A DNA stretch of 64,000 nt, taken from the sequence record LR756502.1; one strand, 5' to 3'. Positions 5,547-55,545 of the stretch are shown one piece after another. The notes below the pieces were generated by a model. That model did no database searches, was not told where the DNA came from, and worked only from the letters and a program-made list of their open reading frames with translations. The first letter of the stretch is position 1; the number at the start of each line of letters is the position of its first letter. A program made the translations under genes and the position numbers.

Positions 5547-6128
5547 ATGAGTTTAGAATTAAGAATGTATGGATTGGTTCCATATAATATAAGTCCAATT
5601 CAACAAGGTATACAATATGGTCATGCTAAGGATGAATATACTCTACGTATATTGGATTTAATTATGAGTGGTGTTTATAGTGAAGATGATAATGTATTAA
5701 ACTATATTGATTGGTTGAGAAACTGGAAAACATATATAATACTTAATGGTGGGACAACTAATAAAGATTTGGAAAAGTTAGGAACACTTAATAAACACTA
5801 TCAAACACTATTAGATTATGATATTTTTTGCACGCCTTTCTATGAGACAGACCTTGGTGACCAGCTAACAGGAGTTAACTTTTTGGTTGATGAAAGAGTC
5901 TTTAATAAAGAAAAATATACTGACTTTGATTTGAAACAATTTTATGGAAATGAGAGGTTGAATTATAGTGAGATTTATAAAGATCCATTTGATCCTAAGT
6001 TTCCTAATAAATACTCATTAATTGGTAATATTCATGTTAAACCTGTGTGGGACAAATGGGTTGAGTCAATTGGTGGTCCAAAGAATTTATTCTTGAGAAT
6101 ATTCTTGAAAAACTTAAGATTAGCATAA
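5547..6128 (+). CDS. Peptidyl-tRNA hydrolase 2 (PTH2)-like phage protein
   Basis: RMYGLV...SPIQQGIQYGHA...W..WKTYIILNGG...FYETDLGDQLT resembles phage PTH2-like proteins. Confidence 0.5.
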   Translation: MSLELRMYGLVPYNISPIQQGIQYGHAKDEYTLRILDLIMSGVYSEDDNVLNYIDWLRNWKTYIILNGGTTNKDLEKLGTLNKHYQTLLDYDIFCTPFYETDLGDQLTGVNFLVDERVFNKEKYTDFDLKQFYGNERLNYSEIYKDPFDPKFPNKYSLIGNIHVKPVWDKWVESIGGPKNLFLRIFLKNLRLA

Positions 6129-6517
6129 TGATTCGGATTAGAAAGGCACTTGATATAAATAACTCAAAGTGGATTAGAATTGATAATAATACATTTGATG
6201 TTGATTCTTGGGAGGTTCAACTATCACTTGGATCACATGCTAACATATCAATTACTATTGATATTAATAAAAATCCAGGATATTACCAATTTTTTATAAA
6301 GACTTATGAAGATTCAAAGAAATTTGACATATATAATACGATGTTTTTAGCAAAGGGATCACATATAAAGAGTATGGATATATCATTTAATAATGAAATT
6401 ACTCTAAGTATAGTATGTGATGTATTGGATCCTATAGATACTCAAGAAAGAAGAGATGAGATAATTGATGATTTACTAAATGATAAAACTTTATCAAAAG
6501 ATAATAATATAACTTAA
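6128..6517 (+). CDS. Hypothetical protein with C-terminal RRDEIIDDLL motif
   Basis: 129-aa ORF overlapping upstream stop. Confidence 0.6.
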   Translation: MIRIRKALDINNSKWIRIDNNTFDVDSWEVQLSLGSHANISITIDINKNPGYYQFFIKTYEDSKKFDIYNTMFLAKGSHIKSMDISFNNEITLSIVCDVLDPIDTQERRDEIIDDLLNDKTLSKDNNIT

Positions 6518-6543
6518 ACGAAATAACCAAATCAATAAAATTT

Positions 6544-8667
6544 ATGAAGAACAAAAACAAAAAAGATGGATCAGAGTATCTTAAGAAGAGAATATCTGTT
6601 CGCGCATCTGCTGCTGATGATGATGAGGATGAGAATAATGGATCGTTTCAATCAAAGAAACCAGATCCTAAATCTAAAACTCCGGTATTGGATTCTTTTA
6701 GTCGTGATTTGACTAAAATGGCTGAAGATGGAAGACTTGATCCTATTGTAGGTCGTGAGAAGGAAATTGAAAGAGTTTCTCAAATTCTTTCACGTAGAAA
6801 GAAAAACAATCCAATTCTTATTGGTGAGCCAGGTGTTGGTAAATCTTCAATTGCTGAAGGTTTGGCACTTAGAATAGTTCAGAGAAAAGTTAGTAGATTA
6901 CTTTTTAATAAAAGAGTTGTTATGCTTGACTTGGCTTCTATGGTTGCTGGTACAAAGTACCGTGGTCAATTTGAAGAGCGCATTAAGGCATTAATGAGTG
7001 AGTTAGAGAAAGAACCAGATGTTATTTTGTTTATTGATGAGATACACACTATAATAGGTGCTGGTGGTGCTTCTGGATCACTTGATGCTTCTAACATGTT
7101 TAAGCCAGCTTTGGCTAGAGGTGAAATACAAATCATTGGAGCAACAACTCTTGATGAGTTTCGTAAGCACATTGAAAAGGATGGGGCGTTAGAAAGAAGA
7201 TTTCAAAAGGTTGTGGTTGAGCCTGCATCTCCTGATGAGACATTTCAAATTATTAATAATATAAAAGATAAGTATGAGTCACATCATCATGTAACTTATA
7301 CTGAAGAAGCTATTAGAGCTTGTGTTGACTTAACCAATCGATATATAAGTGATAGATTTCTTCCTGATAAAGCTATTGATGCTTTGGATGAAGCTGGATC
7401 TAGAGTACATATTTCAAATATTGTTGTTCCTAAAGAAATTACTGATATTGAGACAAAGATTGTTGAGATAAAAGAAAAAAAGAATGATGTTGTTCGTTCA
7501 CAGAAATATGAAGAGGCTGCTAGATTAAGAGATGTTGAGAAACAACTACAATCGTCTTTGGAAGATGCTAGAAAGAGATGGGATGATGAATCTAAAAACC
7601 ACAGACAAACTGTTACAGAAGATAATGTTGCTGAGGTTGTATCAATGATGACTGGTATTCCTTTACAAAAGGTTAATCAGAATGAAACTAATAAACTAGC
7701 TAAGATGAGTGAGACTATTGCTGGTAAGGTTATTGGTCAAGATGACGCTGTTAAGAAAATTGTTAAGGCAATTCAAAGAGGTCGTGTTGGTCTTAAAGAT
7801 CCAAATAAACCAATTGGTACATTTATGTTCCTAGGACCAACTGGTGTTGGTAAGACACAATTGGCTAAAGTACTAGCTAAGTATTTATTTGATTCAGAAG
7901 ATTCATTAATTCGAATTGATATGTCTGAGTATATGGAGAAATTTGCCGTATCTAGATTGATTGGAGCTCCTCCAGGATATGTTGGTCACGATGAAGGTGG
8001 TCAGTTAACTGAAAAAGTAAGACGTAAGCCTTATTCAGTTATACTTCTTGATGAGATTGAGAAGGCACACCCAGAAGTATTTAATATACTTCTTCAAGTT
8101 CTTGATGATGGACAACTTACCGATTCACTTGGTAGAAAGGTTAACTTTAAGAATACTATTATAATAATGACTTCTAATACTGGATCTCGTCAATTAAAAG
8201 AGTTTGGTACCGGAGTTGGATTTATGACAAAGAACAAAGAGGATAAAAAGACTCAGGAAACCAATGATGTTATTGAGAAGGAATTAAAGAAGAAATTTGC
8301 TCCCGAGTTTCTAAACCGTGTTGATGATATTATTATGTTTAATGCATTGGATAAGGATGATATCAATAAGATTATTGATATTGAGATGAAAACTCTTGTA
8401 GATAGAGTTAGCCTAATGGAGTTTGATCTTGAAGTTTCAAAAGTTGCTTCTGAATACATAGCTGAAAAGGGATTTGATGCTGAGTTTGGAGCAAGACCTT
8501 TGAAGAGAGCGATACAAAAATATGTTGAGGATACTCTAACAGAAGAAATAATACAAACAAATCCTGATAAGGGTTCAAAACTATTACTCGACTATAATAA
8601 AGATGAGGATAAGATGTTTGTTACTATTAAGAAGAAAAGGAATAGTAAGAAGAAAGATAGTGAATAA
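6544..8667 (+). CDS. clpC: ClpC-type Clp ATPase lacking the N-terminal Clp repeat domain
   Basis: Walker A GEPGVGKS and [18 protein letters not shown]-like middle coil (YEEAARLRD), GVGF loop, GARPLKR; only ~45 aa precede the AAA1 domain. Confidence 0.9.
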
Positions 8668-8705
8668 AACAAAAAGAGAGTGTAAATTCACTCTCTTTTT
8701 GTTTT
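8666..8705. terminator. Bidirectional intrinsic terminator after clpC
   Basis: AAAACAAAAAGAGAGTG-TAAATT-CACTCTCTTTTTGTTTT inverted repeat. Confidence 0.8.
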
Positions 8706-8733
8706 AAACTTATTTATATTATTAAAGTATAAA
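8706..8733 (+). promoter_or_regulatory. Putative middle-type promoter AAACTT-N16-TATAAA
   Basis: Directly after terminator, 16 nt before 8750. Confidence 0.5.
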
Positions 8734-8749
8734 TAATAAATATACAAAA

Positions 8750-54163: not shown

Positions 54164-54750
54164 TATATATCTCCAAATCTTTTTATTTTGAAAATAGAAC
54201 TGATGTTATCAAGTTTTGCTTTAATGTCCGTAAGTATTTTCTTATGTATGTCATTTAGATTTCTATCCGATTCAATCGATTCAACTATCGCTGATGTTTC
54301 ATTAAAGTAGTTATTTCTAAACTTCTCTGAGGCAGTGAATGCGTCTGATATATTTTGTAACCTATCACATAGTTTAATGATAAGTGCATCATCTGACATA
54401 TGTGTCATTTTATAGATTAAGTAGTCTCTTTTACTACCATCGTATCTATGTTTCATTTCACCCTCATCTGATGTTAATTCCAATACTAAATCTGCAACTC
54501 TTTTACCAAATTTCTCTTTAATTGTACTATAACCCTCCCATTTATCCTTGAAACAATCCTCTATAACATCATGACAAATCGATGCTATTAGTAGATCTTC
54601 ATTTACTGTATATTGCTTAACTATACCATTTACCTTTTGTACATGAGCATCAAAATATGGCATATTAATAAACTTCCTAATTTGATCTTTATGTAGCTCC
54701 CTTGCAAAGTCCCATGCCTGTTTTTCCTTCTCTGTTAGTGGTTGGTTCAT
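54163..54750 (-). CDS. RelA/SpoT-type HD hydrolase (small alarmone hydrolase/Mesh1-like)
   Basis: FARELHKDQIRK...PY..H, SICHDVIED, FGKRVADLVLELT, IKLCDRLQN. Confidence 0.85.
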   Translation of the reverse strand: MNQPLTEKEKQAWDFARELHKDQIRKFINMPYFDAHVQKVNGIVKQYTVNEDLLIASICHDVIEDCFKDKWEGYSTIKEKFGKRVADLVLELTSDEGEMKHRYDGSKRDYLIYKMTHMSDDALIIKLCDRLQNISDAFTASEKFRNNYFNETSAIVESIESDRNLNDIHKKILTDIKAKLDNISSIFKIKRFGDI

Positions 54751-54783
54751 ATATTTTTCCAGATTATTTTATAGTTATTCATT

Positions 54784-54815
54784 CTTGTATATATTAAAAA
54801 ATATCCTTATATTTG
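54784..54815 (+). promoter_or_regulatory. Bacteroidota-type promoter CTTG-N20-TATATTTG
   Basis: Divergent from the late motif; heads 54843-55929 operon. Confidence 0.55.
54788..54796 (-). promoter_or_regulatory. Putative late promoter TAATATATA
   Basis: Heads 54750-52695 operon. Confidence 0.5.
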
Positions 54816-54842
54816 TAGTCTAACCACTAAAACCCATATAAG

Positions 54843-55265
54843 ATGATTACAGATAGTAAAATTTCAGTTATTCAGGAAAAGATTAAAAAAGCCATTGCTC
54901 AGATTGAGATTGATGAGAAAGTTAAAATTTCTTTTGGTAGATGTACTTATAATAAGGCGTTTTATAAAACTGGTATGCAGGTTACTACAACTGAAAAAAC
55001 AGAAGTTGTTAAAGATGTATATGCATCTATTTGTAGGCAACTTGGATTCACCCAAAACATAATTGGTATGAAGTTTGAGGGAACTAGTGGCATATATGAG
55101 ATTATTGATATAAAAACTCGTAATAGAAAATATCCAGTAATTGCTAGAGTTAATCTTAATGGTATAACTAAGCAATTTAAATACTCTGTTGCTGATATTA
55201 AAAAAAGAATCGGTGGTGATAAGGTAATTAATAGAAATGCTAACATTGAAAGATTAATAGGATAA
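54843..55265 (+). CDS. Hypothetical protein, C-terminal NRNANIERLI
   Basis: 140-aa ORF with KTRNRKYPV. Confidence 0.6.
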   Translation: MITDSKISVIQEKIKKAIAQIEIDEKVKISFGRCTYNKAFYKTGMQVTTTEKTEVVKDVYASICRQLGFTQNIIGMKFEGTSGIYEIIDIKTRNRKYPVIARVNLNGITKQFKYSVADIKKRIGGDKVINRNANIERLIG

Positions 55266-55508
55266 ATGATAACAGATAAGTCAATAAAAACATACATAGA
55301 AACCCTTGGGCATAGACCAGCCTGTCCTACCATCGACGCACCTAAAATCGTAGAAGAGTATAAGAGAGGTAAATATGAATTCGACTTCTATGTTAACCAA
55401 CACAACCTATGTTGGTACGCCGATGATATGTGGAAGAGATATAACTCAAACCTACCAACATTCAAAGTACACATCAGAGAAATTAAACTATCCGAAATAG
55501 GATTATAA
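55266..55508 (+). CDS. Hypothetical protein, C-terminal IREIKLSEIG
   Basis: 80-aa ORF. Confidence 0.55.
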   Translation: MITDKSIKTYIETLGHRPACPTIDAPKIVEEYKRGKYEFDFYVNQHNLCWYADDMWKRYNSNLPTFKVHIREIKLSEIGL

Positions 55509-55545
55509 CTAAGTGAAAGAAAAATTAATAAAATTCTAAAATAAA

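Follow-up and report, generated by a model that had tools for sequence, protein, structure and literature searches.

A Conserved C-Terminal Motif Shared by Many Otherwise Unrelated Proteins of a 642-kb Phage Genome

Genome and Locus

The 64,000-nucleotide stretch of DNA analysed here (the window) is identical in sequence to positions 434,001-498,000 of LR756502.1, a complete genome of 642,428 bp that is titled 'uncultured phage' and carries no annotation. Of the complete, circularised genomes described by Al-Shayeb et al. 2020 (PMC7162821), it is one of the four largest, and it was assigned there to the Mahaphage clade with a predicted Bacteroidetes host. In this study, we examined a short C-terminal motif, R-x3-[IL]-x2-[IL], referred to as the tag, which recurs at the ends of small proteins in the window. 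The standard genetic code suits LR756502.1. Genes were called with a dicodon model trained on the long open reading frames (ORFs) of the genome, which gave 984 genes at a coding density of 94%. The start codons are approximate. The C-termini do not depend on the dicodon caller because stop codons are independent of it.

Copies of the Tag in the Window

Eleven peptides had been listed in the initial annotation of the window. All of them were present, 1 to 12 residues before stop codons. The coordinates given with them were gene starts rather than motif positions, and for the minus-strand copy RIRKIKNLL the stop end. Among the 86 genes of the window, the regular expression (regex) matched 11 times within 12 residues of a C-terminus, and 1.2 matches were expected from the internal rate (Poisson P = 8e-8). 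Scores in bits refer to the position matrix described below.

The first copy, RDEIIDDLL (6452-6478, plus strand), is encoded by gene 6128-6517 (129 amino acids, aa) and is followed by a 12-residue tail. It scored 18.1 bits and was classed as 'internal' by the matrix scan, as 13 residues lie beyond position +7. This gene adjoins a ClpC-like gene, directly upstream of it. Its homologs at 17 IMG/VR loci of the tag-bearing clade have kept both the sequence ERRDEIIDEIL and the position beside ClpC.

Three tagged genes on the plus strand form one operon at 43029-44339, with a host-type promoter upstream. They carry REIKLRSLL (43413-43439, gene 43029-43451, 140 aa, 19.7 bits), RELLLTELG(I) (43954-43980, gene 43441-43986, 181 aa, 11.4 bits), and RNTILDDIL (44304-44330, gene 43983-44339, 118 aa, 17.1 bits). 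The second copy belongs to a subtype that ends in LGI-stop, and its gene overlaps the next one in ATGA. The homolog of this protein in the relative LR745206 ends in IREIKLRELGI.

The remaining copies on the plus strand are RNEKLNKLL (45289-45315, gene 45160-45327, 55 aa, 23.6 bits), RDNKINKIL (51581-51607, gene 51383-51616, 77 aa, 21.0 bits), RNQKLNKLI (52450-52476, gene 52243-52509, 88 aa, 24.3 bits, then a 10-residue tail), RNANIERLI (55233-55259, gene 54843-55265, 140 aa), and REIKLSEIG(L) (55476-55502, gene 55266-55508, 80 aa, 24.5 bits). The LR745206 homolog of gene 51383-51616 ends in RERKINTILSE. On the minus strand, RIRKIKNLL (48646-48672) is encoded by gene 48640-48837 (65 aa), the last gene of a grpE-dnaJ operon, and its ortholog behind dnaJ in a 617-kb relative ends in RKKKIKNLLK. 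The weakest copy, RSNSINKI (32372-32395, plus strand, gene 32213-32425, 70 aa), fits the regex and stays below the 10-bit matrix threshold; therefore, it may be a chance match. The product of gene 32213-32425 also matched part of the T4 gp23 capsid protein in Pfam, but only marginally and below the cut-off (E = 0.0013).

C-Terminal Enrichment and Consensus of the Tag

Genome-wide, the pattern ended 0-4 residues from the C-terminus in 150 of the 984 proteins. The terminal rate was 30.5 per 1000 positions, compared with 0.8-1.6 per 1000 at 20 or more residues from the end, an enrichment of 20-30 fold. No regex enrichment was found at the N-termini of the 984 proteins, and shadow (non-gene) ORFs of the same DNA showed no terminal enrichment (3.06 vs 2.52 per 1000). 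The tagged set was defined by a position matrix with a threshold of at least 10 bits. With this matrix, 166 proteins carried the tag within 6 residues of the end and 178 within 12 residues (18% of the 984). Shuffling the last 40 residues of each protein left an expectation of 0.4 tagged proteins. The C-terminal position claimed in the initial annotation thus held strongly across all 984 genes, and the motif is not equally frequent at internal positions or in shuffled K/I/L/N-rich sequence. As the terminal rate lies far above both the internal and the shuffled rates, the observation stands. It is stronger than had been reported, and the interpretation attached to it is partly supported.

The regex-tagged proteins (n = 187) were aligned on the Arg, taken as position 0. 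The consensus was R-[D79 N39 E33]-x-[K112]-[L111 I76]-[N/D/K/E/S]-[K/E]-[I117 L70]-[L87 G48 I23]-x, and the protein ended exactly at position +9 in 84 of the 187. In short form, the tag reads R-[DNE]-x-K-[LI]-x-x-[IL]-[LGI]-x(0-3)-COOH. Weak preferences extend 4-9 residues upstream, with K or a hydrophobic residue at -4 and a hydrophobic residue at -1. Of the 178 matrix-tagged proteins, 73 end in I, L, or V and 68 in K, D, E, or N. Copies of up to 23 bits also occur at internal or subterminal positions, for example in genome 256301-257968, 119170-119535, 612691-613035, and 360293-360928 and in about 30 further genes; these are possibly gene fusions or C-terminal extensions of once-tagged proteins.

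No earlier description of this C-terminal tag was found in literature searches. No Pfam or PHROG family is common to the tagged proteins, a profile of 60 tails had no significant match in the PDB (best E = 1.2), and the ESM Atlas gave no lead for the tag region.

Tagged Proteins Are Otherwise Unrelated

The initial annotation described the tag as portable, on protein bodies without mutual similarity. After removal of the tag, 163 of the 178 bodies had no BLAST paralog in the genome. Only 4 of 150 tagged proteins matched Pfam, each to a different family. In one of the tagged proteins, an 85-residue extension separates the tag from a preceding riboflavin-kinase domain, which is complete (profile positions 7-123 of 124). 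The bodies span 40-620 residues and are mostly small. Both parts of the description were borne out by these data, and common ancestry of the tagged proteins was rejected as an explanation, as neither paralogy nor a common Pfam or PHROG family links the bodies. Thus, about 180 otherwise unrelated, fast-evolving, mostly small proteins carry the tag.

AlphaFold2 modelled the body of protein 54843-55265 with a predicted local distance difference test (pLDDT) score of 85-90 and the tag as a terminal helix (residues 125-139) with a pLDDT of 60-68. The tag is predicted to be a short terminal helix, in which Arg0, L/I4, I/L7, and L8 would share one face. The term 'amphipathic', used earlier for this helix, applies only loosely. 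The invariant Arg is on the hydrophobic face, flanked by L4 and I7, and the mean helical hydrophobic moment is 0.24, below the 0.29 of random 11-mers (mean hydrophobicity -0.26). The moments of control peptides were 0.45 for MinD and 0.57 for FtsA. A membrane-targeting amphipathic helix of the MinD/FtsA type was rejected on account of this low moment and the placement of the Arg.

Selection Acts on the Protein

Selection on the tag could act on the peptide or on the nucleic acid that encodes it. The Arg codons AGA/AGG/CGN were used at 0.69/0.20/0.11 in the tag and at 0.72/0.15/0.14 genome-wide. Leu and Ile interchange at +4 and +7, and their codons differ in the first base. All 178 tag-coding 27-mers were distinct, with a mean nucleotide identity of 57% and a mean longest shared run of 5 nt. 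Third codon positions were less conserved (identity 0.48) than positions 1 and 2 (0.615). These results show that selection on the tag acts on the protein, not on the DNA. Tag codons are biased to those ending in A (GGA, TTA, ATA, AAA). The LGI-stop subtype is mostly encoded by …GGA ATA TGA, and the ATG of the next gene overlaps the stop. There are also 20 tagged genes without a same-strand downstream gene. The A-ending bias and the ATGA overlap are ordinary translational coupling over the tag, not its explanation.

The tag was followed into related genomes. The 634-kb relative LR745206.1, whose ClpC is 84% identical, showed the same terminal enrichment. In 25 homologous pairs with this genome the bodies were 37% identical, Arg0 was kept in 23 of 23, and K3, L4, I7, and L8 were kept in 64-76%. 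The tag was kept in 119 of 120 database homologs of protein 54843-55265. These comparisons of sequences indicate purifying selection on the tag. About 20% of genes were tagged in sampled stretches of metagenomic contigs of 617 and 598 kb.

In the 636-kb genome LR756504.1, whose capsid protein is 51% identical, 26 of 123 sampled genes carried a variant, D-[IL]-R-K-x-K-I-x-[E/N]-L-L-COOH. The core R0-K3-I4-L7-L8 is retained in this variant, and position +1 and the tail length differ; 15 of the 26 tags end at position +8, mostly in -LL-COOH. A kept core with a changed +1 position and tail is the outcome expected from co-evolution with a reader.

No tag was found in the sampled 100 kb of a 735-kb genome (145 genes), in 50 kb of a 462-kb genome, or in 50 kb of Lak-B8. 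None was found in the first 50 kb each of two cultured distant relatives, Tenacibaculum phage PTm1 and Chryseobacterium phage MA9V-2; therefore, no cultivable model was found. Three sampled small proteins of the 735-kb relative LR756501.1 (L115, L116) end in …DPYGEE[ND]W-x-x, which may point to another C-terminal motif common to several proteins or to a small group of paralogs.

Tagged Genes and the N-Terminal Leader Set

Tagged genes are concentrated near the two ends of the record. At 0-20 kb, 22 of 56 genes are tagged, nearly all of them on the plus strand; at 600-640 kb, the figure is 52 of 90, with most on the minus strand. The remainder are scattered. As the genome is circular, these two clusters form one divergent block of about 60 kb around position 1.

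Two promoter-like motifs were found upstream of genes. TAnnTTTG is the established -7 promoter box of Bacteroidetes and was seen in 74 upstream regions, and ATATATA occurs 10-40 nt before start codons in 192. ATATATA precedes the gp23-like capsid gene, a prohead protease candidate, and their neighbours, and was read as a late promoter for this reason. In the window, the Bacteroidetes-type -7 box TATATTTG (motif class A, read from the sequence) lies on the plus strand at 43000-43007, ahead of the tagged operon 43029-44339, and at 54808-54815, ahead of the tagged operon 54843-55508. Where tagged genes have an upstream gap of their own, 11 have the host-type TAnnTTTG and 2 the late-type ATATATA.

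A second shared terminus is found in the genome. The N-terminal leader M-K-[HY]-L-K-x-Y-[KN]-[IL]-[FY]-E-S is common to 40-44 otherwise diverse proteins, nearly all encoded behind ATATATA. Genes with this leader lie on the minus strand of the window at 53720-54163, 40697-41134, and 40314-40697, and elsewhere, e.g., at L001:13051-16151. The leader presumably resembles the capsid-targeting sequence of T4, with a putative I/L-x-E site at which a gp21-type prohead protease would cut. Leader genes had 16 late-type promoters and no host-type promoter. Only 1 of the 984 proteins carries both the tag and the leader. It had been proposed that the tagged genes are early, stand behind host-type promoters, and complement an N-terminally tagged late set. 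The promoter counts and the single overlap agree with this proposal, and the early set does complement the leader set. The further statement, made for the listed proteins, that the leader is absent holds for the whole tagged set with the exception of that one protein.

Clp Genes and Their Co-Occurrence with the Tag

The initial annotation suggested a phage ClpC as one possible partner of the tag, and such a gene is indeed present. Gene 6544-8667 (plus strand) encodes a ClpC-like double-AAA+ unfoldase of 707 aa with the Pfam domains AAA, AAA_lid_9, UVR, AAA_2, and ClpB_D2-small, and is a candidate tag reader. The protein aligns to residues 155-802 of Bacillus subtilis ClpC. It lacks the Clp_N domain, keeps the M-domain, and has a GVGF loop at the position of the VGF ClpP-docking loop of ClpC. 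The genome also gave two canonical ClpP matches (260 and 234 bits), a weaker third, and a ClpS, and it encodes DnaK, DnaJ, and GrpE. The two ClpP paralogs and ClpS lie on the minus strand at genome 58607-59281, 112095-112817, and 205052-205333. The usual docking site of ClpS is the N-domain, which is missing from the phage ClpC.

Three other candidates around the Clp machinery were rejected. A transfer-messenger RNA (tmRNA) as the source of a related tag was rejected, as none was found in the genome. For the adaptor MecA, the sole match was a 12.5-bit fragment with stop codons. The third is a 193-residue protein encoded at window 5547-6128 (plus strand), conserved directly upstream of the tagged gene 6128-6517 and ClpC. 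It had no match in Pfam or PDB sequence searches. Its AlphaFold2 model (pLDDT 84) matched archaeal/human peptidyl-tRNA hydrolase 2 (PTH2; Foldseek probability 1.0, TM ~0.6), and its C-terminus is FLRxFLKNxRLA-COOH. As a tag receptor it was rejected, since a homolog is found in the tag-less 462-kb phage and only a 20-bit fragment in the tagged 636-kb genome.

Among six complete relatives, only the three tag-bearing genomes (642, 634, and 636 kb) have a ClpC-like gene together with two canonical ClpP genes. The 735-kb genome, equally distant, has ClpC without ClpP and had no tag in its 145 sampled genes. Lak-B8 has a ClpX-like gene and one ClpP; in the 462-kb genome, both a ClpC-like gene and a canonical ClpP are lacking. 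The occurrence of DnaK does not follow that of the tag, as the tag-less 735-kb and Lak genomes have DnaK too.

Possible Readers of the Tag

The terminal enrichment, the unrelated bodies, and the conservation together make it very probable that the tag is a real docking or recognition tag at the protein level. It appears to behave like a portable address or a disposal label, and we infer that one conserved partner reads it. A broader and tentative proposal is that these phages of the 600-kb class sort their own proteins by a two-letter code, in which the N-terminal leader on about 40 late proteins would direct them to the capsid and the C-terminal helix on about 180 early proteins would be read by a dedicated, co-evolving phage receptor.

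By sequence, the tag is not a member of the Clp degrons, the type IV effector signals, or the T4 capsid-targeting sequences. In scale, the closest analogue is the effectors of type IV secretion (Dot/Icm and VirB/D4). There, a single genome encodes hundreds of mostly orphan proteins that evolve fast and have in common a short C-terminal signal, which one receptor complex recognises. Their signals are loose and compositional (Glu-rich or Arg-rich), whereas the tag is a motif in fixed register. No secretion apparatus is implied for the tagged proteins, and the infected cell is the place of their synthesis.

C-terminal degrons of AAA+ proteases, such as ssrA and MuA for ClpXP, ClpAP, and ClpCP, are like the tag in being short, at the extreme C-terminus, and portable between unrelated proteins. 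As with these degrons, the genome that carries the tag also encodes ClpP and an unfoldase with a loop for docking on it. Known Clp degrons end in non-polar residues next to the free carboxylate, LAA in ssrA and KKAI in MuA; the tags do so in part, with I, L, or V last in 73 of 178 and K, D, E, or N last in 68, and in the 636-kb variant mostly with -LL-COOH in the 15 of 26 that end at +8. Two features expected of such a degron were found, namely an extreme C-terminal signal on unrelated substrates (150 of 984; 84 of 187 end exactly at +9) and an available pair of ClpP-docking unfoldase (GVGF loop) and ClpP (260 and 234 bits). The tag differs from such degrons in that the genes themselves encode it, on about 18% of proteins, whereas ssrA is appended by tmRNA. 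It also has another sequence, with the invariant Arg nine residues from the end, and a predicted helix. On the reading that we favour, though with low confidence, the tag would be a built-in C-terminal degron for the phage's own Clp protease, formed by the ClpC-like unfoldase without N-domain but with the VGF loop and the two ClpP paralogs. The phage could then clear its entire early proteome on schedule; the late proteins have a different leader, at the N-terminus. The co-occurrence of the tag with a ClpC-like gene and two ClpP genes among the six genomes, and the tagged gene next to ClpC across the tag-bearing clade, speak for this reading.

We give the degron proposal a low probability, since untagged phages, too, can have ClpC-like and ClpP genes. 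Several observations weigh against it. The range of the ClpC-like and ClpP genes exceeds that of the tag: on IMG/VR contig 3300022890_000011 the two lie within about 15 kb and the roughly 67 genes around them are untagged, about 45 ClpC loci at 58-64% identity are essentially tag-less (1 in L087), and several ClpP loci at 67-76% identity are without the tag. The six-genome correlation between Clp genes and the tag is small and phylogenetically confounded, and the tag-less calls for the 735-kb, 462-kb, and Lak genomes come from sampled stretches of 50-100 kb. The N-domain of ClpC is where known adaptors and phospho-arginine marks are read; therefore, a ClpC-like protein without this domain offers no known docking site. 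Degrons are usually disordered, not helical. Many tags are followed by 1-3 polar residues, and about 37 strong copies, by the matrix, are internal or 13-33 residues from the end. The tagged riboflavin kinase is also not an obvious candidate for programmed turnover.

About equally likely as the Clp degron is a non-proteolytic docking or localisation signal, which may tether early proteins to one hub or site such as a replication/transcription factory, a scaffold, the sliding clamp, or host RNA polymerase. It would draw on the same protein-level evidence, and the imperfect tracking of the tag by Clp genes speaks for it. A conserved Arg amid a small hydrophobic face is typical of helices that bind in a groove containing an acidic pocket, and the variant tag of the 636-kb lineage is what a receptor of its own, co-evolving with the tag, could have brought about. 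The phage is T4-like in its capsid genes, and T4-like phages use clamp-binding tails on several proteins. These PIP-box/clamp tails (Q-x-x-[LIM]-x-x-[FY]-[FY]; T4 gp43, gp33, gp55) are, like the tag, at the extreme C-terminus, with an h-x-x-h-h core of the same spacing and basic flanks. As a PIP-box or clamp motif proper, however, the tag was rejected. Position +1 is D/N/E in 151 of 187 tags and Q in 3, +7 is I/L, and +8 is L/G/I, with F in 8 of 187. The Gln and the aromatic pair of clamp-binding motifs are thus missing, the invariant Arg is absent from clamp motifs, and the carriers of the tag are far too many for known clamp clients. More generally, no candidate receptor emerged, neither DnaK nor the PTH2-like ClpC neighbour co-occurs with the tag, and it is hard to explain why about 180 different proteins, riboflavin kinase included, would share one docking site.

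It is unlikely that the tag is a self-association or structural element, that is, an oligomerisation helix or fold cap without a common external reader. The predicted helix, the L-x-x-L-G-I subtype, which would fit a Schellman C-cap pattern, and the weak upstream preferences at -4 and -1 are consistent with it. An invariant Arg in a fixed C-terminal register on unrelated bodies of 40-620 residues would be unexpected for a generic cap. The pLDDT of the tag is lower than that of the body, and three hydrophobic residues are few for a coiled coil.

Recruitment of the phage DnaK/DnaJ/GrpE to newly made orphan proteins is still less likely. The phage encodes all three chaperones, small tagged genes lie inside the grpE-dnaJ operon in three relatives, and Leu/Ile flanked by basic residues resembles DnaK-binding peptides. 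However, the tag-less 735-kb and Lak genomes also have DnaK, the tag has few hydrophobic residues and an often acidic +1 position, and a C-terminal signal emerges too late to help co-translational folding.

We consider it very unlikely that the tag is a packaging signal, by which proteins destined for injection would be loaded into the prohead in the manner of C-terminal cargo or scaffold peptides. Basic C-terminal helices do load cargo into HK97-fold shells, as in encapsulin cargo peptides and the C-termini of scaffolding proteins, and the phage has a very large T4-like capsid. The tagged genes are on host-type early promoters, not on the late ATATATA of the capsid genes, and about 180 cargo species would be implausible. 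A separate leader on about 40 late proteins already resembles the T4 capsid-targeting sequence. That sequence, which is N-terminal and removed by the gp21 prohead protease, is like the tag a phage-encoded terminal tag on unrelated proteins; its look-alike in this genome is the leader, MKHLKxYKxFE|S. The genome encodes a gp23-like capsid protein, and its match to a gp21-like protease is weak. The tag itself was rejected as a capsid-targeting sequence of the T4 type, as it is C-terminal, is on early-promoter genes (11 host-type vs 2 late-type), and is absent from all leader-bearing proteins except one.

A signal in the nucleic acid or in translation (a next-gene start, an RNA signal, or a recombination linker), with the peptide as a by-product, could draw on the A-ending codons and the tight coupling to the next gene with its ATGA overlap, and is close to refuted by the genome-like use of AGR and CGN, the Leu/Ile interchange, the poorly conserved third positions, the absence of identical 27-mers, the 20 tagged genes without a same-strand downstream gene, and the loss of the signal on residue shuffling.

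Implications for Huge Phages

Huge phages carry hundreds of small orphan genes that are hard to annotate, and a tag on about 18% of the proteome is a common handle for them. It groups orphan proteins as an early-class set and predicts a single partner that could be reached with one peptide. The tag also offers a portable experimental label, and its lineage variants give a handle for co-evolution analysis. If the Clp protease were the reader, this would be the first case of a virus that sets the lifetime of its early proteome by an encoded degron. If docking or localisation were the function, a new organising centre would exist in infected Bacteroidetes cells. If the two-letter code were true, the early proteome would be handled as one unit, e.g., destroyed by ClpC-ClpP1P2 or gathered at one site, and the virus would encode a sorting or turnover system at proteome scale, of a kind undescribed for any phage.

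Other Features of the Genome and the Window

Public runs that contain LR756502.1 DNA are freshwater metagenomes, with no RNA run among them. The 598-kb relative encodes a 1497-residue protein (L025:1-1215) with Por_Secre_tail, a C-terminal domain of type IX secretion, which is consistent with a Bacteroidetes host for the clade. ARAGORN called a tRNA-like gene at window 1101-1174 (plus strand), with an undetermined anticodon of two bases (tt), and a further 45 tRNA genes were called in the genome, most of them in arrays between 373 and 423 kb. Around the ClpC gene, window 2611-32223 (plus strand) is occupied by a long operon of sugar-nucleotide and glycan enzymes, which includes epimerases/dehydratases, DegT aminotransferases, GT2 and GT6 glycosyltransferases, C-methyltransferases, and an FkbM methyltransferase.

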